64,000 nt of DNA, from assembly GCA_965649825.1 (NCBI GenBank), contig OZ287708.1, positions 515,411 to 579,410 on the forward strand. Reading direction: 5' to 3'. Both the position numbers and the translations under genes were made by a program. The DNA is from Penicillus capitatus (Eukaryota; Plantae; Chlorophyta). Shown here piece by piece: positions 36,620 to 51,600 of this stretch (the first letter of the stretch is position 1; the number at the start of each line of letters is the position of its first letter). The notes beneath the pieces are model-generated. The model did no database searches and was not told the DNA's origin. It worked only from the letters and a program-made list of their open reading frames with translations.

Positions 36620-39600
36620 ATGCTGCGGTCGCTGCTTCTGCTGCTGATCACCCTACATTTCGGCCTTGGTGCAGACGAGCTTGGCAGTGTCTACAGGCCG
36701 CAACATAGTCGGTCGTTTCTCGTCCGAGAAAAATCCCTAGGTTCGTCGACGCTTCTGGTGCCTTACAGCCGCATCTCTCGTGCTGATTATGATAGCCCTA
36801 CAAGTAAATCAAAGGACTTGGTACTCGACGAACACACAACTGTCGACTCTCCTGCCATATCCTGAAGGCCAACTTTCGGTGCGTCTCTTCCTTCCAAGGC
36901 AATCGATGGACACTCTTTTCAGATGCAGATGATGACAGATACACGCGAATTGCTTCACTCAAACGATATTCATGAGAACAATCCTGGAGGTCCAATTCTT
37001 TCACGTTTATCGTTTTTTAGCTGTCTGTTGTTTGCTGGGCAGGTTATGTGTGCTCTCTGTCACCCAGTGATGTAGATCAGTACCGAAACGCAGTGTCGAA
37101 AACGTGGATCGTGGATGAACAAGTGCTTGATGCGATCGACCGCGATTTGCAGTCTGTCATCAACTGCACGCAAAAGGGAGATGTTGTTCTATTCAACACA
37201 TCGTCTCCCATTCGACCATCCTCTCGCATCACGATTCCCTGGACGCTTACCATCAGCGCATACGTCCCGGATGTTAAACGCATCGATGGCGTTTTTCCGC
37301 ATTCCGAAAAGAAATCGATATTCATATGCCCTCGTAAAAACGAAGGTCTGTTTCGTGTCCAGTAAGCAAACTCTTTTCGACAATGCTGACATCGACCTTG
37401 CCATTCAATCATAGGGCTGAAAGCGTTACCTTTGCTAACGCTGTTTTCCAAGAGTGTTCTTTTGGTATGGGCGAAGACAGAGTTCAGTCGATTATTAAAA
37501 TAGAAAAGTGCCAGAATCGACAAGGGAGCGGAAAAGTTCAGTTGCACTGGGTCGGATTCAGAGACAATAGACTCATCGGCGCTGTTGGACTGAAACTGCC
37601 GTCTCCTGATTGCTTATCGGTGAAGATGGTTGATGTCTTCTTCGCCAAAAACACCTGTTCGCGAAGGGGTTGTTTTGCCTCGCTTCCCTCAAACAGCCGT
37701 GTCAAACGTTGTTCCATCTACAAGAACAAGGCAGCCAAGAAGCGCAATACATTTCCATCTATCCTCTATACTCCAGCTGGTTCCAAAACGATAGCTGAAG
37801 AGATAACAGCAAACCGAAATACACTCGTCGTGTTTGAAGCAGTCGAGAGTTCCGTCTACATGAAGGAATCCCAGTTTATTCGCAATGGACGGAAGAGTGC
37901 AACGAATGAGAGCTTGTCTTTTTCGTGCGTCAGTTTCGACAGAACGGCTGCGAACATCAAGGACTGCATCTTCAAGAACAACATCGGCAAGTTAGGGGCG
38001 GCAATATACACGAAGCGATCCAATGTCGTCGTGACCGGAACATCGTTCGAAGACAATCGGGCGGTCAAAGGGGGGAGTCTGTTGTTCGAAGATGATAGCA
38101 AGATCGTCATCAACGGCAGCCGTTTCACAAGGAACCAAGCCACTCTTTTGGGTGGATGCATGATTGCCATGGACTCGACACTCGTCATGCGTCAGGTGGA
38201 GGCGAAAGCGAACTTTGCTGGCAAACGTGGCGGATGTGTTGCAGCCAAGAGGACTGTGATGGAACTGCGCCGTGTCGTCGCATCTGATAACAGCGCTGGA
38301 GGAGATGGTGGATGCATCAGTATGCTAAATTCGCAACTGGATGTCTCGAATTCGAAGTTCACCAATGGCACCGCCGTTGTAGCCGGCGGCATCATATCAG
38401 CAGACAAGGACAGCTCGTTAAAAATGGTGCGTTCGTGGATGATAGAGGGGAGAGCAGAAGGCGGTGGGGCTGTGGCACTCAATGGATCTCATCTGAGGGC
38501 GAACAACATAACGATCGAGTATTGTGGTGCTGAGCTGGATGGTGGAGGCGTCAGGGGAAATGCTTTCTCTGACTTTCTCTGCGTCTATTGCACAATCAGA
38601 CACAATACAGCGGGTAGAAATGGAGGCGCTATCTCATTCGATTCCGATGGAAATGAGGTACTTACTGTGCAGCTGACAAAATCCCGAATAGAACATAATA
38701 GTGCTGATCGTGGAGGTGACGAATCGTTTGATCCGAGCGAGGCCATGCATAACGGTTGTGTTGTGTTGTTAGGGGGACTTCATTTTGTCAGCAGTCGGCA
38801 GAACGGAGATTGCCTTGCCAAGGATTTTAGTTGCCCATTTGCAGCGATAGTGAATACGATCTTTGACAGTAACGAAGCTAGGAATGCGGGAGGCGCCATG
38901 TTTGTTGGATATTCAGGAGCCATTAGATTTCAATGCGGACCGCTCGAAGACGGTGATGATCTTCTTTTCTATAAGAGAAGACAATGGGAGACGTTTTATT
39001 GTCTCACAAAGAAGTATGATATGTGCTCGGCATGGAGAGGCAACAAGGCCGCCCTATACGGCGACAAGATTGGAACGTATGCCGCGACTGCTCAGTTGAT
39101 TGTCGAAGACAGAAACGACAAGAAAGATGCCGAATGGAGCAGGAAGCAGAAGATTTTCAAAAATTATAGCAACGGCACCGTCCTGCCGGCCATTCGGATA
39201 CGATTGCTGGATGGTCTGGGTCAAAAACATGCAACGAGCTACCATGACATCGTAGCCACCATGTCATCTCCAGACGATTTCTTCGCGGATGCCATCACTG
39301 TGACACTGAAGGACGGAGCTGGCAGCTTCTCTCGTGTTGCTGGTTATGCACCTCCTGGCGAACACAGAGTGGTCATCAAATTCAACGACGAAGCCATCGA
39401 GTCTTTGTACCTGAAGGTGCATGTCCGGCAATGCAGGATCAATGAAGAAACCAGCGAAGACTCGGGTTGCGATCCGTGCAATGATTCCAGTTTTAACTTC
39501 GATCCCCAATCGGAGAAATGTCAGAAATGTCCTGACCATGGCAACTGTGAATCCAATATCATACTGCCAGAACCCACATTCTGGCATCCCATGCCTTGCT

Positions 39601-41489
39601 CCGTCCATGTTCAGAAGTGTTTGGCTTCCGAAGCCTGCAAACCGGATGGCCGAGGGGAACATCTTGAAAAAGTGACAAGAGATGTAGAGAACTGCAGTTT
39701 TACATCAGGTCAGATAGACGACTACCGTAGCGCTCAATGCCTAGAGGTCGATCTCGATGTCTTCTCTCGGCTGTAGCAGCTTGAGTGTTTGTGTACTGTT
39801 AGGGACACACCGGTCCCCTTTGTGGATCTTGCCAAGGTACTCATGGGAATTCTTTGTCATCAACCTGCACTCGCTGCTCGAGCATTTACACAAACGTGTG
39901 TTTCATTGTCTTCTCCATTTTGGGTCTTCTCATGTTCACCAGTATTACCATGCGAGGAAACCTCAACGTACCCAGTGAACTGCAAACGGAACAGACCAGT
40001 TCATGCGAATCCCACAACAGCGAAGATGACTTTGTTGGTTTTCCTGAGTTGTTTGAAATCGAATGCACTACAACAACAGTCGATCATCACACCGTCCAAG
40101 TCGAAGAGCCTAACGAGACAGCGGACACCTGTTCGATCACTGAAAAGTTGCTAGCGAAATGGAAGGCCATCGAAATGCTTAAGGTATGGATGGTCCTTGT
40201 GACGTCCATCCAGTTCCATTAAACCATCATTGCGTTCTAGATTACCATGACTTATGTCCAAGTCACGGTACTCATCACATCGATCGATGCGGGGTGGACA
40301 TTTTCGTTGCTTTTGGTCGCGGAATATACAGGTAACCCGCAAAGATGCTTCACATCTCTGCTTAACATGTTTGATCTGGATTTGGATGACAGAATTCCTC
40401 GGCGGATTAGCATCTGAGGGTATTCGCCGATGCGCTGTCTGTGTCAGCACAGATACGACATCACTGCATCGTATGGCGATGGCTCTTATTGTCGATATCT
40501 TCGTCATCCCTGTCTTTTCCTTCTTTATCCTTGCCAGCTTCTGGTTCGTCATGACGATCGTACAGAAGTTATCCTTTCGGTACTTGCTTAAAAGATACTT
40601 ACTGACAATGATGGTACTATGGTATGTGACATTCATGCCAGTAATGCGTTTGACTTTAAGTCTGGCACTTTGTGTCGATGTCCACGACACCAGAGAGTAC
40701 GGAGAAGATACCAAGACGAGCTATTGGGCAGTCGACACAAGCCTGGAGTGCTTTGATGGTACACATTCTGCGTTGATCTACTTTCTGGCTTTATCATTTG
40801 TCTGTCCTGTCTATGGGGGATCTCTTATCCTCTTCATCACTGCTCTGAGTCGCCAAGAGAGCGAACGTTCCAAACTTGACGGTTGGATTTATGAGACCAT
40901 GGGGTTCCTCTATCGCAGTTACAAACATGGAATGCGTCATTTCTGGGAGGTAGCCATTGTTTTCAGGAAAGCAGGCATAGCATTCTTGATTTTTTGCGCC
41001 CATCGGTACGAAAGCGTTACCTTTGTCGTCATTACTGGAATCTTCATTGCTGTCGCGATGGGAGCACACGCGCTCGTGATGCCATATCGACCGGAATTCC
41101 GTGTGTTGAATAAGTTTGAGCTTTCATCACTTTTCGTATCTTTGTTGACGACACTGATCACAGCGATGCTAAAGAGCGAGGAGAACCCAAACGATCATTG
41201 GCGTGATACCGCAAGCATTGGCTGCATGATGCTCAATGGCATTACCCTTTTCTGTTTTGGGTACTTCGTTGCTCGTTACACAATTCGATACATAAAACTG
41301 GATCTCGAATCCGACGGCGTCCGGATCTGCAGTAATGCCGGTGTCTGTCGAATCTTATCGCACTGGATTTGCCACGAGATAGAGCTTTTACTGTCGAATG
41401 CAGGCCTGCGGCAGACGGTCTGCCCAACAAGTGTCCCTACAACAACGAAAACCTCCAGCGGAGCGTCCATCATTTCGTCTGCCAATTGA
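36620..41489 (+). CDS. large secreted/membrane protein: signal peptide, GGA(I/V)-type beta-helix repeats, Cys-rich region, C-terminal multi-TM block
   Basis: MLRSLLLLLITLHFGLG; repeated N.A..GGAI/GGCI motifs; CDPC..CQKC..C; WAVDTSLECF, GFLYRSY..FWE. Confidence 0.8.
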
Positions 41490-42011
41490 TTGAGGAACTG
41501 CGATGACTCTTTTGAGCTGTATGTGCATCTACTAAGTCTTTCGAAAGTTACAAAAAATGGACAAAACCCTGTTGTGTCTTGTTTTCTTGTGAACGATTTT
41601 ACTTTGTTACCATTCAGCAAGCAAACATAGGTGAGTTGGTTCTGTCTTGAATGCGAATGCATGAGTTGAATTCTGGTGGAGAGTATACTGAATTAACTCA
41701 AAAAACTGCATTGCTCGATACGGGTCACTCTAATCTCTCGTTATCGCATCTCGAGGCGTCTGCGTGCTGCGACAAGGGAGAAAGAGGTCGGCATCGATCG
41801 CGTACAGGATCGATAGCCGACACCATAGCGCATCTGCTGTGATGGCTTATGGATGTTTCGCACTATTTCGGCTCAGACGTGACATACGCACCTCCGATTT
41901 CTTAGACGCGAAAACCTTTAGCGAGGGTGAATCATACATACCAGTCATTGCGCAGTCGATGAGGATCAAAGTGATCTTGAGTGCTCATCGCATTCATTCG
42001 ATTCGAACTCT

Positions 42012-45000
42012 ATGTCACTTGAAAGAGACGACGTCGCTGCGATCGACACAGAATCTAAAGAAGGTCGTAGCAGCGATGCGCATGGTCACTCCAGCCCACC
42101 CGATAAGCTGATCGCGAATAGCGAAACAACGTCCGTCAAAACGGAACTCGATAATGCATCTGACAGAGAGAAGTCGAATCCGGCCGATCAACGTTCCGAA
42201 ATCGGAGGAGAAACGCAACAGCAAACATCATCAAATGTCGCGTCGGATGATAAGGGAGACGGGAATGACGCGCTGACGGAGCCAAGACCACTATGCATCG
42301 ACAGCGATGGCGAAATGCCAAAAGGCGAAGACAGTGAGCCTAACGAAGAAGGTCGACATAGACGAAAGAATCATCGCGTTCAAAGGTTATTATAACTTCG
42401 GAAGATGCATTCCCTCATAAAAGCGTTGCGATGTCCAGTCGCGATTCGAATGTTAAAAAAGATTCGCAGGAGAGAATCCCGAAATCGTCGAAACGATCTC
42501 GTCGACATGAGAGGCGTAACGAACGCTGCCCAGATTCCGATCGGCCGACAAGAACGCGTAATCTTGCCCTTGCCTTGCTCTTTCACAGAATCGTCTGGCA
42601 GATAACGAGAAACGAAATCGAAAGGAGCAACATCAAAGGCGCAGACGGTCTAAACACGATCGGCAACGATCGCGCTCGTCGACATCTTATCCAGACTCTG
42701 GCATAAATCTTCAGACACCGTTCTTTTCTAAGGGAATTTGTCGATGCTAGATGGAGAATCATCAGACGTCCGATCATCGTCAGACTATTCGGAAAGAAGT
42801 GAAAAAAGAAAACGCGGACAAATCGGAAAAGATCGACAGTATCAGAGGCGTCGAAAGTACTCCAGTCGGCGGAGATCAAAGAAAAAACGATCGCGAGATC
42901 GATCGAGTCGACATCGATCGTCCAGTCGAGATCGACGCAGAAGAGACTCCTCTCGCGAAACGTTGACATCGGGATTCACCTCCGACAAGCACTCACGATC
43001 TATCGCGGAATTTGAAGACATTAGCGAATGGGGAAGAACAGCCGTTCCTGAATTCTATGCATTCAAAGGAAAGCCCGATAGTAAAGATTCACTGAGCAGC
43101 GGATTGACACCCCGAGAACGATTTCCGGCAAAACGCGAGTGGGCATCGGAAGATGCTTACCGTTCTCTCGCACATCGTTCGCTTGCATACGGCGCAGCAG
43201 CAGCGATACCTGGCGGATCTTACAATGGAGATGATCTCCCAACCCGCGTTGCATATGAGCATCTGAGGGCACTGGCAGGTATGGCAGGAAAAGTACAGGA
43301 TGCGATCTTGCATAATAAACTCGTCTTCGAGAAGCGCATTATCCACCAAGAGCAAGCAGAGTGTCGAAAGGCTCTTTTGACTTGGCATCATGTGCTTATC
43401 AGACGGCAGACAAAACAAAACATTCTAGCCAGAGCTGTCCGTCGCATCAGCCGCAGCATCATGTTCCGAGTGTTTGATGCGTGGCGGAATTTGATCAGTG
43501 TGCGAGATCGAACGACCAATAGACTCAAGAAGGTCTTAGCCAATGCATTCTTACGGTGGTGCGTGACGATCATATGCTTCATCGATGTCAGGCTGCTCAG
43601 GTTAAGAGAAAAGGCCAATTGAAGAGATGTTTCAAAGAATGGCTACGCGTCTGTGTGGATCGGTCGTGGAAGGCACAGCTGAAGACACGGGAACTCGAAA
43701 TCTTAAACATGAGAGACAAGCTGCGACAGCAGGCCAAACGCCATGTGCTTTTTTTCAGCAGGCAACGATACAAACGGCTTCTCAGTGCTTGGTATGAAAT
43801 CGCATCGAGCGAAAGAACCAAGAAGACGAAAATCGATCGTGCAAAAAAGAGCTACGAACAGAGACTGTGCTTCAGCGTCGTCACAAACTGGTAAGCTGCA
43901 TCGCGATCGACTTCAGCTCACCACTCTCAGGCTGGGTTACATGGAATGCTGCCTACAAACGCGACGTCTGCTGTTAAAAGCGACAAAGAGGATCCAATGG
44001 CTAAAGTCACGCGTCCTGTTGCATTGGTGGCTGGACTTCGTTACACAGCAGAAACAGAACCGCGTTTTATTGGCTGAGATAACGGAGAATGCACAACAAT
44101 CGCGAATAAGAAGAGCACTTGTGCAATGGATCACTATTCATCGAAGCGATTCAGATCGATTGCGTCATGTCCATCGATGGAAATCGTCATTGAAGGTAAA
44201 TCGTCGTCCTTCGCAGCGCGCGCGTTTTATCGATCTTCTCGTCTCCGTCTCACATCGTCCCAAATGAAGCGTGCGATTGGCGAATCCCTTCTGGGACATT
44301 CTCCGAAAGCGATCCATGCACTGAAGAAAGCTAAGGCGACCGACGAGGGATCGACGAGTCCCGCTGTCGCATCTCTGCCCACAGTGCATACGCTGAAGAG
44401 CGTCATCTTTGGGAAGCTCGAAAAGCGTTACAAACGTTTCTTGACCGATGTCGTTCTCGACGAATCTGGCGAAACGGTGGTGGCGCATTGTCCGAACACT
44501 GGACCTCTACTCGGTCTGATCGACAATCCCTCTCCGGCTGTTTTGCTCAGCAAGAGTGCAGATCCAAAACGCAAGTGCCCTTACACTCTGGAAGCGATTC
44601 GACGCGAAAAAGGAGCGGAATCTTCGTGGATCGGAATCCATAGCGCCTTGGCCAATAAAATGGTGCACTCTATGCTAAAACAGAAACAGATTCCAGAATT
44701 CAAGGACTATGATACTATCCGAGCTGAGGCCGTATACGGTAAAGACAAGAAATCCAGAGCCGATTTTCTGTTGAGCACTTCGGAAGGCGACCGCTGTATC
44801 TATGTCGAAGTGAAAGCTATTACATACTCTGAAGAGAGGGATGGTGTCGAGGTCGGACTCTTCCCTGACACCAAAAGCACACGTGCCCAGAAGCATCTGA
44901 ACGAACTTATGCATATCAAGAAAGAGCGAGCGGAGGTCGCTTGTGTGTTTGTGGTACTCGGTAACCCGTGCAACCTGGTCCGCCCATTCAAAGAAAAGGA

Positions 45001-45899
45001 CGCCAAATTCGCAGAGCTTTTGAAGAAAGCGCAGGATGCAGGCGTCATCATGATCGGCATCGGACTGGAATTAGCTATCACGAGCGAAAGCGATTGCGAT
45101 TTCGTGTTCAAGCGCTTCCTCGATGTCAAAGCAGATCGCACATGATGAGCATCGATCGTGTGCTCTAGGTGAAAGTTTTTTGTGTACTCAGAGAACGATC
45201 AAAGTATAAGAAGAAGATACGAGCCATCTTAAATGAATGCGATGCAAAACATCAAACAGAACGCTCTGCGCGATGCTTCAAGAGATGGACGGCTTTCGTG
45301 AGAGATGCCCGAGAGGGTCGATGGCTCGAGAAGATCGAAATGGCCTCGACCGAGATCGACAAACTCCGATCGGAAAACGCACGTCTCCGTCGCGATAACG
45401 AGCGCTTTGTCCGTCTGATCGACAGCGGCGAATGGGGACGTGGTCGCATCGACGAATTGAAACGGGTACCCCCTCCTTTGTGCTGACTCGCCACAAGAAG
45501 CAACGGAACGTCGAACAGGCTGGCGAAGTGCTGAAGTCCGAACGCGATGCTCTGGATGGCTTGGTACTCACTTTGCGTCGCGAGTACGAGGCGATGCAGA
45601 CAGCCAAACAACAACAAGAGCAGGAACTGCGCGATCTCAAACACAAAGTCGTCTCTGGTGGAGCCAGATCTCCGGCGGCGCGAAACAAGATGCTGGTTCG
45701 CGGAGCATCAAGCTTCAATTCGTTAGTCCGGGCGCTAAAGCAGGATTTGATCGATCATACAGAGACGGCGAAAAACCCGAGTTTGATGCTCGAAATCGAT
45801 AAGATGGCAATGGACAAAGTTCACGTCTTTCCGGATGGAGAACTGAAAATTGAAGCCGTCAAAAAAGCAAACGAAACATCGACGCCCTCCTTTCGGTAA
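42012..45899 (+). CDS. RS-rich / Sfi1-like W-repeat coiled-coil protein; host of the nested SfsA gene
   Basis: Frame-consistent exons with F..W repeats (VFDAW, CFKEW, LSAW, LVQW, HRW | CFKRW); phase-0 intron 44196-45168 joins RWKSSLK|VKVFCV. Confidence 0.7.
44264..45145 (+). CDS. sfsA: SfsA-family PD-(D/E)XK-fold protein, intronless, inside an intron; alternative start 44177
   Basis: RYKRFLTDV, AHCPNTG, SRADFLL, YVEVK, FPDTKSTRAQKHLNEL. Confidence 0.93.
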   Translation: MKRAIGESLLGHSPKAIHALKKAKATDEGSTSPAVASLPTVHTLKSVIFGKLEKRYKRFLTDVVLDESGETVVAHCPNTGPLLGLIDNPSPAVLLSKSADPKRKCPYTLEAIRREKGAESSWIGIHSALANKMVHSMLKQKQIPEFKDYDTIRAEAVYGKDKKSRADFLLSTSEGDRCIYVEVKAITYSEERDGVEVGLFPDTKSTRAQKHLNELMHIKKERAEVACVFVVLGNPCNLVRPFKEKDAKFAELLKKAQDAGVIMIGIGLELAITSESDCDFVFKRFLDVKADRT

Positions 45900-46228
45900 C
45901 CGACTCTGTTGACGGTGAGAATACCTATCGATGGATAGCCCAATCTTACATCCTGTCATGCCCGTACAGACGAGTATCGCAACGATAAGGATGGTTCTAA
46001 AAGAATAAGCAATTCTCGTTCTCGGACATATTCCACTCCCTCCACGTATTCGTGCACAAAGACATCTGAATAGCACAGCATTCTTTTAGTCGAGACAATC
46101 TCATTGGCTAAAAACAGAAGCCTTTTGCGATTTCCGATGGTTTGTTTGGTATCGATATGTGTCTTTTACATCAAGATCAGTATGCTTTCGTGAACGAGCT
46201 ATCGTTTCGATCACGTCGGACGGTGTTT

Positions 46229-48011
46229 TTACCATTGCATTGTTACAATGACTCCAAGGAACGTGACAGTAGAACATACGGCTGCCAAAGAGACACACGA
46301 AGCGCCCGATTCTTCGTGGTAGTAACACGGTCTCGTGTCCGTAACTCCGGTACAACGCGCATGACAAGCGCTTGCGTATTCTTCTCCAGACAACGCACTG
46401 CAGATCGGTTTGTTTTCTCTGCAATTCTCGAGACACACGCGAAGCGATTGACTCTCCTACAACAAGACTTTTCGATCGGGACGTTATCCATCTTCTGTGG
46501 CGTGACCTTGGAACCCGAAGATTCTGAAGATCCTTTAAGGACAATGCGGAGTTCATCGAGAAGAGCCTTGTTATTTCCTGTCGCCCTCGCTGCAATGATT
46601 TCCAGTTGTGTTATGACGATCGGTGAAAGTCGCGTTCTCGCTTCCATCATACGTTCCTCATCGGAAAGAATCTCTCTATATCAGACGCATCAGTAAGATT
46701 GATCTAGTATCGATCGATCGAGTTGTACTTTGCACGTTCGAGTTCATCATCCGTGATCTGTTCACCCATAATGATCTTGTAGGCCATGAGCATCAACTCT
46801 GGCGGAAAGGACGCAACATCCACGCCAAGTTGCTGAAACGTCGCCGCGACTTCTGGCGGCAGTGCGGGCTCAGGTGCGGATTGTGGGCTTGGGGGAATTG
46901 CCAGATCTGACGGCGGTGCAAAATTGTACGTATCGATGATATCAACGACCGATGGTTTGAAAGTACCCGACGCCTGTCCATCTAACACTTCGATCTTGGG
47001 CTCTTCGACGATCGGTCCGTCGCCCGAGAGAACAAAGTCGACCACAAGAGATCCGCAATCGAGTACATCATCGACACCCTATTCGATACAGATCACTCGC
47101 CGCCTATGCGGATCGAAACTCACGAGACACTTGGCGTAACACGGAGACGTATACTGTCTGCCGTCAATGTCGCAGACGGGATTGACATCCTTCTTCGTCT
47201 GTCCGCAGCCGCATCCAGCTTTCCAGGAAAGAGGCGCATGTTTTTCGTACAGAACGAAGGGATCTCTTTCCAACACGACCGTTTGGAAAACGGGATAGCA
47301 GTGCTCCACGACGTTGGCTCCTTTGCACTTCGCGACGCAGTAGTTCGTGAACCAATATCCATTGTAATCGCACACGGGATCAAAATGCGATGGGCACACG
47401 CATTCTGCTGCCACCTCTTCGACGAAACGCTCTTCGTCGGTGGCGCCATGCGGCTGTTCTTTAGGATCTTCGATCGGTTCCTTGACGTTCACCATCGGAT
47501 CCGGAATCGCCGTCACGTATTCTTGAATACAGCCTGGAACGTTTTCCTTGTCGAAAGGGCACTGGCTTAACCCCAATAACGACGTTAGCGACACCCTGAT
47601 GGAAGTTCGAGTGTGCCGATCTCAGGGATCGTCTGTGTGTTGTTACCCGACAGCGGCGAGAGGCGATGCAAGGGTAATCAGGCAAGCTTGCAGTATTGAC
47701 TGTGCGCCGGCGAAGCCTCCGGTCGATTCCAGATCGAAGCCGGAGGAGCGCAGGGCTGGGATAATGACGTCGGTCAATGAACACAAACAGGCATCACAGG
47801 AAGCAGATTTCGATGAATCCAGGTTATCTAGATAATACAGATCGTCTTTTCAATTGAAGGAATTCTCAACGAGACCGCAAAATTGCTTGACGCCGGTGAA
47901 GCTGATTGTGCTTGCTCTCTGAGGGGAGATCGGGCATTGCTTCCCAGCGACTTGTACAGTGATAAGAAAGAAGAGCGATGATAAACATAAAATCGGAGCC
48001 GGATAACACAT
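46229..48011 (-). CDS. secreted three-Kazal-domain protein with GPI-like hydrophobic tail
   Basis: Signal MCYPAPILCLSSLFFLITVQVAG; CVC..DPVCDYNGYWFTNYCVAKC, PVCDIDGRQYTSPCYAKC, KPICSALSGEEYASACHARC; ends SGA..VTFLGVIVTMQW*. Confidence 0.8.
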
Positions 48012-48645
48012 CTTGATCTCCAAACGTATCGACCACGTAGCTCGATCGGGTGCGCCAATCGTCGGAATCGGAGGCGGCATCGATTTCGAAGCCATTCGAC
48101 AGAGTAAATCGTCTTGGAGGAATCGAGAAGCTCACCGGCAACAATCACTGACTGTCAAACGACTTCGACGGATTCGTCTAAGGCAGATAAGCAGGTTCAC
48201 AAACGCAGCTTACGAGACGCATCGGCATGATACGATCCAGCAATATAGTAGCGATGTATGGAACACCGTGGCGGTTTCAAAGTGAAATGCAATGGCCATA
48301 TCTGGTTTAAGAGAAGAGACTAACGCCGAAGTATCTGTCCAGTTGCATTCGCCTCTAACAGAATCGTCGTGCAATACAAGTTGTCTCTGCCGCGCAGCAC
48401 TTGTTAACTAAATGATCCAACTGTTCAAGAAGATCTGCTTATTCTTCTTTGTCGACATTCATAGAACGATGCTGAATTCTGTGGTTTGACGTGGGACACT
48501 TGTTCGCACAGGTGTGATTGTTTCTTATCCTTTTTAACAGCCGAAAGATGTGATTTCGGGAGGTATTCACTCGCTCATACACAAAACCTCGAATAGACAT
48601 GCGTTAAAGAATCCGTTGAACAAGGTTGTTTTCAACAAAAGGATT

Positions 48646-51600
48646 TTAGATGATCTTGTGAATCTTCCAAAATCCAGGTTTCTCTTTGTTGACCTCCTCT
48701 GCCTTTTCTGCAGAAGTCACTGCAACAACGCGTGCTTGATCGCCCTTTAACGCATCCAGTTTCTCTCCGAATCGCACAAAATCTTCTTTGGTCGTGCCCA
48801 GCAGTTCATCTCTTCGTTGCTGTCTCCATTCATCTGTGATTCCGACAAAATGGCGAACCATGGCAGTGTTTCCTTTAGCATCAGGCAACTGATAGGCATC
48901 TACACTGCCGATGGCTCCGACGATGGCCGTTACTAGAGCGTCTTCGTCCATCTCTGTTGTCTTTAGGAAATTGGCGGCATCCTCGTAGGCCTTGATAGAT
49001 TCCATCAGATTGGGATCTCTGTACGAGACAAAGGTACAGACACCAGACTGCGAATCCAATGACGTCATGCAACCGTAAGCACCACCCAAGACTCTCACAC
49101 GGTCCCACAGCCACGTTCCAAAGAGATGCTTTGTCACAACAGATGATGATCCATGGACTTTGAAATCGGTCGCTTTGAAGAAATTCACTCCCTTGCCAAC
49201 GTAATTCACCTGAGTTGGAATCGTGAATGCCTCGTTCTCTGCAGGAAGGAGGACATTCCATTTCTGTTTTTCCAGACTTGGAGAGGGAAGAGCGGAAAGC
49301 AGAGCATCCACATGTGGCTGTGCTTCGGATATAGTCTCCTTGTCTGCTGTCATGTTCACCGTGCAGTTATTCGTGCAGATCAGATATCGTCGGCACTCCT
49401 CCAGCTGCTGCAGAACACTTGGCCAGTCTTGATCGACACGTTGTACGAGATCTCTAATAAATGTAATGTAAGAGATGCCAGACATCCGCTCGTTGACGGC
49501 ATCGGCTAAACATTGCTGTGCAGCCAGGCGCTTGACGGCGAAGCTGTGGCCGGCTCTGGAAATGGAGCTCTCCAATCCAGACTTGGTTTCCAACACCATC
49601 TGCTTGAAGCGCTCCTTGTCATCCAACTTTGCACTGAGCAAAATCTCTTTGATGATATCCATTGTGTCCCCAATTTTATCTTTCATGGCTTTTCCGGAGA
49701 TCAACATTTTCGCGACGGGTTCCTCCGAATCGCGCTTGCTCGTAACCAAAGAAGAAGCGCTGACGCCACCCGTCTTTTGTCCAATCAACTCAATGAGTTG
49801 CACGAAGTCGCGCTTTTTAGTGCCCATCTCTGTCAGACAATCGCAAAACAGTGGCACCATGGGCAAAAGCTCCTCTGGCAGGGATGTCATATCCAATGCC
49901 AAGGTAAAGTAAAGAATATCGTTCGTAAAGAGATCGTGTGTTAGATAAGTGACAGACCCTTCCTGTCGGACCTCCGTCGGAATCTTCTGAGCTTCTTTGG
50001 GCAGGTCAGAGAGTTTCAACAGGGGAACACACTTGAGATCCTCTGGCGAATCGGGTTTCTCTTGGCGTTCCTTGAGGATCTTGGTCAACTGCACTTGCTC
50101 CTGTAGATCCTGTTCAGTCATTTCTGCTTTGATTTGAGCCAACTTCTCCTGCTCAGTCTTCAGCTTTTTTGCCGCCATTTCTGTATCCGGCTGCATCTCT
50201 AATGTGATCCTGTGTTTGTTCCCCAGCAGAAATGTCTTGATCAGTTCTCCGAAAACATCCTTCCCGGAGGCTAACTGATCTTTCAACTCCTGTAAAGGCT
50301 CTTCCCACTGGAGGTTCTCGATGGGATCTCTCTCGTAATTCCATGCTTCGTTGGCGCGCATCATGAGTGAGAGTCCACGAGGGTATCGACCTGTGTTGTT
50401 CTCTCTGAGACTGAACTCGATCGTGTTCATTGCGGCATCAATCGCGTCTTGAGAAAAGCCTTCTTTTGCCAGACGCTCCAATTCTTCGATGATGATGCCT
50501 TCCACTTTGCCAGCATTCTGCGACTCCACTCCCTTAAGGCCAACGTGGAAAGTGGGTTGTCGCATGCTGTCATCCAATCCGCCGCCGACGACAGACTCCC
50601 CGAGATTGCTGTCCGTCAGACGCTTATAGAGTGGCGCAGCAGGTGTCCCCATTAACAAGTGATTGAGAAAGGACAGGGCGAGTTGCGTTTTAATATCCAG
50701 GTGGTCTTCAGACAGTAACCAATGGAGAGAGGCAAATGTCTTGTCATCCTCTCCGGCAGCATAGGCGTCCACGATTTTCTTCGGCTCAGAAAAGAACTTC
50801 TGCTGATCGATCTCAGAATCGATTTTCTTCTTGGAAAACTGCTCGAGATAGTCATTAAGAATCTCCAGTCGTTTAACAGGATCGTCGTTTCCAGAAAACC
50901 AAATCTTGGCATTGCTTGGATGATAGTAGGTGTCGTGGAACTCCTGTAGAGAAGATGAGCTGACGGTTAGGGAACGCCACACCAGTTGAGTACTCCTTAC
51001 CTTAAATTGCTCAAAGTTAAGATTCGGGATGTCCACTGGATCGCCGCCGCTCTCATGCCAATATGCATTGTCAGGAAAGAGCAGCCGTTCGCCTCGCAAC
51101 GCATGAACCTGATCAGGCGATGAGAAACTGCCTTTCATTTCATTGAAGACAACACCCTTGTACGTCAAGGGATTGTCCACTTTATCCAACTCATAATGCC
51201 ATCCCTCTTGTGCAAAGATCAACGGATCCCTCAAGCAATTTGGAAAGAACACAGCATCCAAGTAGATGTCGACGAGATTGTAAAAGTCTTGGACATTGCA
51301 CGATGCTACGGGATAACACGTTCTGTCAGGAAATGTCATTGCATTGAGAAATGTCTGCAAAGATCCTTTGATCAGCTGGACAAATGGCTCCTTGATGGGA
51401 TACTTTCGACTTCCACAGAGAACAGAGTGTTCCATAATGTGTGGAACACCTGTGGAATCACTCACAGGCGTTCGAAAGCTAATCGAAAAACATTTGTTCT
51501 CATCTTCATTCACCACAGACAACAGTTCGGCGCCTAAAACGTAAAGGGTATCACACGTGAACGTATGATGAAAGCACCACGACCTGTTTTCTTGTGGACG

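Follow-up and report, generated by a model that had tools for sequence, protein, structure and literature searches.

Here we describe an intact gene for an SfsA-family protein that lies, on the same strand, within a spliceosomal intron of another protein-coding gene in a 64-kb stretch of Penicillus capitatus DNA (contig OZ287708.1, positions 515,411 to 579,410; the whole stretch is hereafter termed the window, and positions are counted from its first letter). Judged by its orthologs, the host is a conserved green-algal gene for an Sfi1-repeat 'centriole proteome' protein, and both flanks of SfsA are parts of this one gene. We consider it likely that SfsA relocated in sense orientation into an old phase-0 intron of the host gene in an ancestor of these algae and has been kept there since, probably with a transcript of its own that starts internally. 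The intron is 973 nt long, at least 16 times longer than the other host introns traced (59, 40 and 53 nt), and the SfsA open reading frame (ORF) occupies 91% of it (Table 1). An initial annotation of the stretch had described the junction sequences, the phase of 0 on both sides, the 973-nt length and an intron more than ten times longer than any other traced, and every one of its sequence statements was confirmed. It had also taken the arrangement to be a same-strand nested gene in a spliceosomal intron of a single host, which is borne out by the colinearity of host orthologs and the exact conservation of the intron position described below.

A single host gene spans SfsA

On the donor side, the host exon ends in TTG AAG (44190–44195) and is followed by GT (44196–44197); on the acceptor side, AG (45167–45168) is followed by GTG AAA from 45169 onwards, and both junctions are in phase 0. 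The SfsA coding sequence (44264–45145) lies entirely between donor and acceptor (44196–45168). It starts with the ATG at 44264 and ends with a TGA (45143–45145) that is directly abutted by a second TGA (to 45148), and 23 nt separate the stop from the end of the acceptor AG. The acceptor AG itself belongs to a TAG (45166–45168) in frame with the downstream exon, as it does in one of the related loci discussed below (L002:7842–7844).

When spliced across this junction, the host product matches single proteins of 700–870 aa in a large protein collection, with E values of 1e-89 to 1e-47 and 97–100% query coverage. The matched orthologs come from Scenedesmus, Pleodorina, Volvox, Gonium, Edaphochlamys, Tetradesmus, Myrmecia, Trebouxia, Cymbomonas and Micromonas, and include a protein derived from an MMETSP transcript (P0137); their source names in UniRef and NCBI are 'Sfi1 spindle body domain-containing protein' or 'centriole proteome protein'. 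In the alignment, ...HVHRWKSSLK/VKVFCVLRER... of the window (the slash marks the splice junction, here and below) stands opposite ...RWKNPMK ARALRGW... of the orthologs without a gap, and the proteins of Scenedesmus, Pleodorina, Myrmecia and Micromonas, as well as the MMETSP transcript, carry no indel at this point. The exon equivalent to the one that ends before SfsA terminates at RW plus five residues in Scenedesmus, in Pleodorina and in five of the SfsA-bearing loci introduced below (L002, L005, L006, L007 and L011). The exon downstream of SfsA has no identity of its own: it continues the same repeat protein and runs into the invariant RLRRDNERFVRLIDSGEW motif (RLRRDNERFVRLxDSGxW in the ortholog alignment).

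A Pfam scan of the 678-aa spliced host product returned no family at E ≤ 1, including no curated Sfi1 model, and centrin binding and a centriolar location of the host are putative. Position 42744 is the first in-frame ATG of the first host ORF, and additional 5′ exons are possible.

The nested gene encodes an intact SfsA protein

The nested gene is predicted to encode a protein of 293 aa with a basic N-terminal extension of 45 aa, an OB domain and a PD-(D/E)XK domain. It scores 183.1 bits against TIGR00230, the NCBIfam equivalog model for SfsA (curated cut-off 126.45), and matches PF17746 (N-terminal OB fold; residues 54–125, E = 3.4e-17), PF03749 (C-terminal PD-(D/E)XK domain; E = 5.4e-33) and an E. 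coli-type SfsA structure (PDB 4dap; E = 2.8e-34). D167, E182 and K184, which lie in the SRADF and YVEVK motifs, are invariant across 20 aligned homologues, as are 31 columns overall. The intronless 293-aa ORF with intact D and ExK that had been recognized at the outset is thus supported by TIGR00230, by PF17746 and PF03749 and by the 20-homologue alignment, and the product is, by these matches, a predicted DNA/RNA nuclease-family protein. The biochemistry of SfsA is thin even for the E. coli protein, for which binding to DNA is demonstrated but nuclease activity is a prediction only; the D...E-x-K motif is described in the same work (PMC1189080).

Nested SfsA is under purifying selection, with a ratio of nonsynonymous to synonymous rates (dN/dS) of 0.067 between two related loci, L005 and L006 (synonymous divergence from L007 and L002 is saturated). 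Its composition is like that of the host, with a third-position GC content (GC3) of 0.56 compared with 0.50.

All eukaryotic SfsA proteins examined start with MKR and carry a second basic cluster 9–17 residues further on (KKAK, KRAR, KRHK or KKLK), a pattern that cyanobacterial SfsA lacks. In the window protein (residues 1–45, 44264–44400), this N-terminal pattern appears more like a bipartite nuclear localization signal than a transit peptide.

The nesting is conserved and the intron is older than its content

We compared the locus with the contigs that encode the closest SfsA proteins. In six of these (L001, L002, L005, L006, L007 and L011), SfsA lies between the same host exons, with everything on one strand. 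The SfsA of L001 is 98% identical to that of the window (99.2% at the DNA level); the others are more divergent, with 59% identity in L007 (whose SfsA is 82% identical to that of Caulerpa lentillifera), 56% in L002, 47% in L005, 45% in L006 and 41% in L011. The intron measures 949 nt in L007, approximately 1,370 nt in L011, approximately 1,790 nt in L006 and approximately 1,930 nt in both L002 and L005. In these five loci it is bounded by GT...AG, is in phase 0 and interrupts the host at the identical codon boundary. The donors of the SfsA-bearing relatives always follow RW or KW plus five residues (RWNTIFL/GTAATT, KWKNPFL/GTATGC, RWKNPFQ/GTAAGG, RWKTPLM/GTAAGC and KWKNPFM/GTGCGC), the acceptor precedes [AGD]xx[LF]..W, and protein conservation reaches the acceptor in all lineages. 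The intron segment upstream of SfsA is 31 nt long in L007, 68 nt in the window, 82 nt in L002 and approximately 0.8–0.96 kb in L006 and L005; in the window, L002 and L007, the intronic flanks of SfsA are thus 31–82 nt on the 5′ side, and they are 23–45 nt on the 3′ side.

A gene model of Ostreobium quekettii (P0010; EukProt evm.model.scf_702.2) matched both the SfsA and the host queries. In this model, SfsA (residues 1 to approximately 245) is fused to the 3′ exons of the host. The chimera is an annotation error due to the nesting, and from it we infer that SfsA and the host are adjacent and co-oriented in Ostreobium as well. By these comparisons, the nesting is conserved across deeply diverged lineages, with at least six besides that of the window once Ostreobium is counted.

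The L002 intron holds two tandem SfsA copies (L002:6001–6870 and L002:6955–7812), 84 nt apart within the one host intron. The second copy is 47% identical to the first and has HCQD-GP in place of the near-invariant HCPNTGP; it keeps D, E and K, and dN/dS between the copies is 0.17. In a neighbour-joining tree it clusters with a stand-alone copy on another contig (L003, described below), a grouping suggestive of either an old paralogue or long-branch attraction.

Outside these algae, the same intron is found without SfsA. The ortholog of Scenedesmus sp. (L009) has a phase-0 intron at exactly this point (RWMQPAK/gtgcgg...271 nt...cag/ARALSGW), and that of Pleodorina starrii (L012) has an intron of approximately 570 nt at the same point; no SfsA similarity was found in these two introns or elsewhere in those loci. 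Host orthologs thus include empty sites, and because SfsA-free introns occupy the same codon boundary in Scenedesmus and Pleodorina, the intron predates the insertion of SfsA. The host gene of Myrmecia bisecta has no intron at this position, and that of Micromonas is entirely intronless. All of the SfsA-free introns observed come from green algae of other classes.

Ancestry of SfsA and its probable move into the intron

Among the matches listed, the nearest relatives of the window SfsA are the proteins of two siphonous Bryopsidales, Caulerpa and Ostreobium. The named prokaryotic proteins within its best 120 matches are all cyanobacterial (approximately 39–47% identity), and the remainder of the named matches are eukaryotic relatives. 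A search started from an MMETSP SfsA found the gene to be widespread in Chlorophyta (Chlamydomonas, Volvox, Pleodorina, Coccomyxa, Botryococcus, Myrmecia, Micractinium, Auxenochlorella, Ulva, Dunaliella and a pedinophyte) and present in oomycetes. By its homologues, SfsA is an old nuclear gene of cyanobacterial ancestry. A recent horizontal gene transfer is ruled out by the host-like composition and by the wide occurrence of SfsA in chlorophytes and oomycetes; of the horizontal origin considered in the initial annotation, only a distant cyanobacterial ancestry is retained.

In Myrmecia and Pleodorina, SfsA and the host gene lie apart. The stand-alone SfsA of Myrmecia, which has at least four introns, is flanked by SPT5 and a HORMA gene on a contig other than that of the host gene; the two Pleodorina genes lie on separate contigs and bear distant locus tags. 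The nested gene is intronless in all seven lineages, including L005 and L006, whose genomes have longer introns. SfsA probably entered this intron prior to the divergence of these siphonous algae, possibly through retroposition of an intronless copy. The retro-derived origin first proposed for the nested gene is thus plausible, given intronless nested copies as opposed to at least four introns in the stand-alone gene of Myrmecia.

Expression of the nested gene

The sequence of events that best accommodates these observations would be as follows. In the ancestor of these algae, a nuclear SfsA gene, probably as an intronless, retroposed copy, would have lodged in sense orientation in a pre-existing phase-0 intron after the RWxxxxx of the host, and the arrangement would have been stable since. 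Splicing of the host pre-mRNA would remove the whole of SfsA and join ...RWKSSLK to VKVFCV..., and SfsA would then depend on an RNA in which the host donor is left unused. Its own transcript would most likely start in the last ~90 nt before the ATG (the end of host exon 3 and the 5′ end of the intron), and so lack the host donor, and would end in or beyond the downstream host exons. In a compact genome like this one, the non-coding flanks of SfsA within the intron have shrunk to 68 and 23 nt. Because these flanks are so short, the two transcription units would have to overlap; the 23-nt segment in particular is too short for a 3′ untranslated region (UTR) and a poly(A) signal, and the 3′ end of SfsA would therefore overlap the downstream host exons.

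On this evidence, an internal start site is the most likely route to an SfsA mRNA. Ahead of the SfsA start, the host mRNA contains 28 ATGs, and the last 87 nt (from 44177 on, comprising the end of exon 3 and the 5′ segment of the intron) are free of them; the ATG-free leader of SfsA is 101–114 nt long in L002, L005 and L006. L005 and L006 have the layout of a self-contained nested gene: the intron extends for approximately 0.8–0.96 kb upstream of SfsA, and TGTAA motifs occur 40–71 nt past its stop, still ahead of the acceptor. TGTAA is the usual poly(A) signal of chlorophytes. None was found on the forward strand in 44000–46600 of the window, even past the host stop at 45899, a result that is uninformative for this locus. 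Across the forward strand of the whole 64-kb window, TGTAA occurs 39 times against approximately 62 expected, and the organism may use another 3′-end signal.

Several observations weigh against this account. A related SfsA (P0005, 50% identity) stands alone and intronless between a C5orf34-like gene and a gene for phosphoglycerate kinase (PGK) on two JGI metagenome contigs (L003:6001–6864 and L004:473–1336), and its flanks in L003 and L004 show no similarity to the host gene. SfsA has therefore held at least two locations among these algae: the nested location is not universal, and a second move or a paralogue may be part of the history. The case for retroposition rests on one intron-bearing outgroup gene, that of Myrmecia, and the stand-alone L003 copy is intronless too. 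No poly(A) remnant or target-site duplication was found at the insertion, a weak result as decay is expected over such a time. Flanks of 68 and 23 nt are too small to hold a promoter or poly(A) site of the usual kind within the intron, so an independent transcript would require regulatory signals within host exons. Finally, the SfsA genes of the window and L001 differ by six nonsynonymous and two synonymous codons, too few to interpret, and no constraint is visible at this scale.

The main rival to an independent transcript is a bicistronic host mRNA that retains the intron. A truncated host ORF would run to the TGA at 44265–44267 and SfsA would be translated after it, by termination–reinitiation or leaky scanning, such that each primary transcript gives either the centriole protein or SfsA. 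We consider this improbable. It would account for the short intronic flanks, which are too short for a separate promoter and terminator, and for the host frame, which when read through the donor reaches a TGA that overlaps the SfsA ATG (44264–44266) as ATGA; polycistronic mRNAs are, moreover, widespread in green algae, some with overlapping stop and start codons (PMC7896298 and PMC11291117). L001 has the identical overlap, but L002 and L007 lack it, so that it is probably a coincidence; termination–reinitiation at ATGA was set aside on the same grounds. Further difficulties are the number of ATGs (counted in all frames) and the ORF of at least 1.35 kb that precede SfsA, whereas the first ORF of known algal bicistrons is short (median approximately 290–360 nt) and the sequence before the second is depleted of ATGs, with reinitiation argued against (PMC11291117). 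The upstream intron sequence in L005 and L006 is also promoter-like.

A related conjecture concerns the compact siphonous algae, in which SfsA may have no private control sequence and be made only from RNA shared with the centriole gene. We regard this as unlikely. If true, SfsA would come from unspliced or partly processed host RNA, or from a start in exon 3 with a shared 3′ end, and whether this one intron is spliced would decide which of the two is made, the centriole protein or the nuclease-family protein, a coupling kept since before the lineages diverged.

The possibility that the host has split is more doubtful still, and we give it very little weight. Here an upstream gene would end at the TGA at 44267, SfsA would follow, and a downstream gene would start from an internal methionine such as the ATG at 45337, with 44196–45168 left unspliced. 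The upstream frame indeed runs only 23 codons to its stop, the downstream exon does contain a methionine (MASTEIDKL), gene callers split the region on related contigs, and the Ostreobium model leaves the flanks unjoined. But the 23 read-through codons are not conserved, L002 has no methionine at the corresponding position, and the callers used on those contigs are prokaryote-style and unable to join exons. Six lineages and two SfsA-free outgroups have consensus GT and AG at exactly the homologous codon boundary, and conservation extends up to the acceptor ([AG][KRS][AT]L..[GA]W), covering approximately 56 residues before the methionine of the window.

The intron shows no mark of a mobile element

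No Rfam match was found at E ≤ 1 in 43500–46000, which speaks against a group I, group II or other structured RNA in this region. Neither terminal inverted repeats nor a target-site duplication was found at 44196 and 45168, where only short chance repeats occur, and the 64-kb window holds no further SfsA copy. SfsA occupies one orthologous site in seven lineages, and no sporadic distribution or multiple sites were seen.

A homing-type nuclease, with the SfsA ORF spreading its own intron or itself into empty alleles, would fit the intact PD-(D/E)XK catalytic motif, an ORF that nearly fills its intron and the tandem pair in L002, but we give it practically no credence, given an intron that is older than the ORF and SfsA-free in Scenedesmus and Pleodorina, a single orthologous site despite SfsA proteins that are only 40–60% identical, purifying selection as for a cellular gene, the ordinary stand-alone nuclear SfsA of other chlorophytes, and the lack of group I or II RNA, terminal repeats, target duplications or a second copy in the window. 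The intron-borne mobile nuclease entertained in the initial annotation therefore fails every test applied: the intron is the older partner, with SfsA-free counterparts in outgroups, the site is fixed across deep divergences, no ribozyme or terminal repeats were detected, and the window has one copy. That annotation had named an ancient, single-copy and non-cleaving arrangement as evidence against mobility alone; essentially this was found, in that the arrangement is ancient and the 64-kb window has one copy. Nothing at this locus supports the idea that nucleases drive the mobility of spliceosomal introns.

Comparison with known systems

Genes nested within introns occur commonly in animals. 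In Drosophila, approximately 10% of genes take part in nested structures; 71% of nested genes lie on the strand opposite to the host, and 72.5% of same-strand nested genes have a single exon, a feature interpreted as the result of selection against mis-splicing (PMC3814207). The locus described here resembles the nested genes of Drosophila and mammals (PMC3814207, PMC5174743 and PMC11694760) in that a complete, same-strand, single-exon gene sits in one host intron and is probably derived from a duplicate or retrocopy that inserted into an existing intron. It differs in the size of that intron, which at 973 nt is tiny for a host and 91% filled in a genome whose introns measure 40–60 nt, and in the tandem pair found in the intron of one algal lineage. 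The classical definition of a nested gene excludes overlap with host exons or UTRs, whereas the UTRs and control signals of SfsA are likely to overlap host exons. Nested genes of flies are typically young, whereas the pairing of SfsA with its host has been kept across lineages in which SfsA is only 40–60% identical.

As a member of its family (TIGR00230; PF17746 and PF03749; E. coli SfsA, 4dap), the window protein has the expected order of OB fold and PD-(D/E)XK domain, an intact D...ExK and a score over the cut-off. It differs from bacterial members in being eukaryotic and nuclear-encoded and in its 45-aa extension, which starts with MKR and carries a second basic cluster absent in bacteria. 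The polycistronic loci of green algae (Gallaher et al. 2021, PMC7896298; PMC11291117) share with this locus the group of organisms, the same-strand ORFs and, if the intron is retained, a short or overlapping spacer. Their first ORF is short and poor in ATGs, whereas here it is at least 1.35 kb long and rich in them, and the second ORF here lies inside an intron that is normally removed. Homing-endonuclease ORFs of group I and II introns are likewise nuclease-fold ORFs in introns; the SfsA intron, by contrast, is a spliceosomal GT–AG intron without ribozyme structure that is older than its ORF, and SfsA is a cellular gene of housekeeping type with a single fixed location.

In the literature searched, we found no account of SfsA in green algae or of its nesting in a centriole gene. 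The locus corrects existing annotation: callers of the prokaryotic type break up the host gene, and in the Ostreobium EVM model SfsA is joined to host 3′ exons. It provides a clean case of a gene that entered a pre-existing intron and was retained over deep divergence, with the intron still SfsA-free in outgroups, and, with 91% of the intron taken up by the ORF, it is a small natural system in which to examine how promoter, splice and 3′-end signals are shared between a host and a gene nested on its own strand.

Feature coordinates and neighbouring genes

Table 1 Features of the host gene and nested SfsA gene in the window
Feature	Position	Strand	Basis
Host exon with conserved EFEDISEWGRT...LAGMAGKVQ region	42744..43532	+	ORF translation; aligns to orthologs P0124–P0158 and to L002, L005, L006 and L007
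Host intron, 59 nt, GT–AG, phase 0	43533..43591	+	Frame continuity; spliced product gapless against orthologs
Host exon, Sfi1-like W repeats	43592..43890	+	Alignment to orthologs
Host intron, 40 nt, GTAAGC...CTCAG, phase 2	43891..43930	+	Traced in sequence
Host exon 3, terminating in ...HVHRWKSSLK	43931..44195	+	Sequence; ortholog alignment
Host intron, 973 nt, GTAAAT...CTCTAG, phase 0, containing the nested gene	44196..45168	+	Sequence; position and phase shared by five other SfsA-bearing loci
Intron 5′ segment, 68 nt, pyrimidine-rich (TTTTATCGATCTTCTCGTCTCCGTCTCAC), presumed SfsA 5′ UTR and core promoter	44196..44263	+	Sequence
Nested SfsA, intronless coding sequence, 293 aa, tandem stops TGATGA	44264..45145	+	ORF list; profile matches
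Intron 3′ segment, 23 nt, with acceptor	45146..45168	+	Sequence
Host exon, from VKVFCVLRER... onward, including another Sfi1-like repeat (CFKRW) and an invariant motif, ENxRLRRDNERFVRLIDSGEW	45169..45465	+	Ortholog alignment
Host intron, 53 nt, GTACCC...AACAG, phase 0, CTGAC branch-like motif	45466..45518	+	Traced in sequence
Last coding exon of host (AGEVLKSERDAL...VHVFPDGELKIEA...), stop TAA at 45897–45899	45519..45899	+	ORF list; ortholog alignment

Downstream of the host gene, the reverse strand carries an ORF for a two-domain Kazal-type inhibitor (47082–47594), found at the same place downstream in L002 and L011, and a gene for a PreP-like M16 peptidase (approximately 48640–51150), which occupies the equivalent place in L001 and L002. 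Positions 38264–51148 of the window and the ENA contig L001 are 99.2% identical over 12.9 kb. Their 100 differences are unevenly spread, with 22 in 42264–43263 and 21 in 47264–48263; six of the eight differing SfsA codons and eight of the 17 differing host codons are nonsynonymous, numbers too small for a test of selection. The window and L001 probably represent two haplotypes or two strains of a single species.

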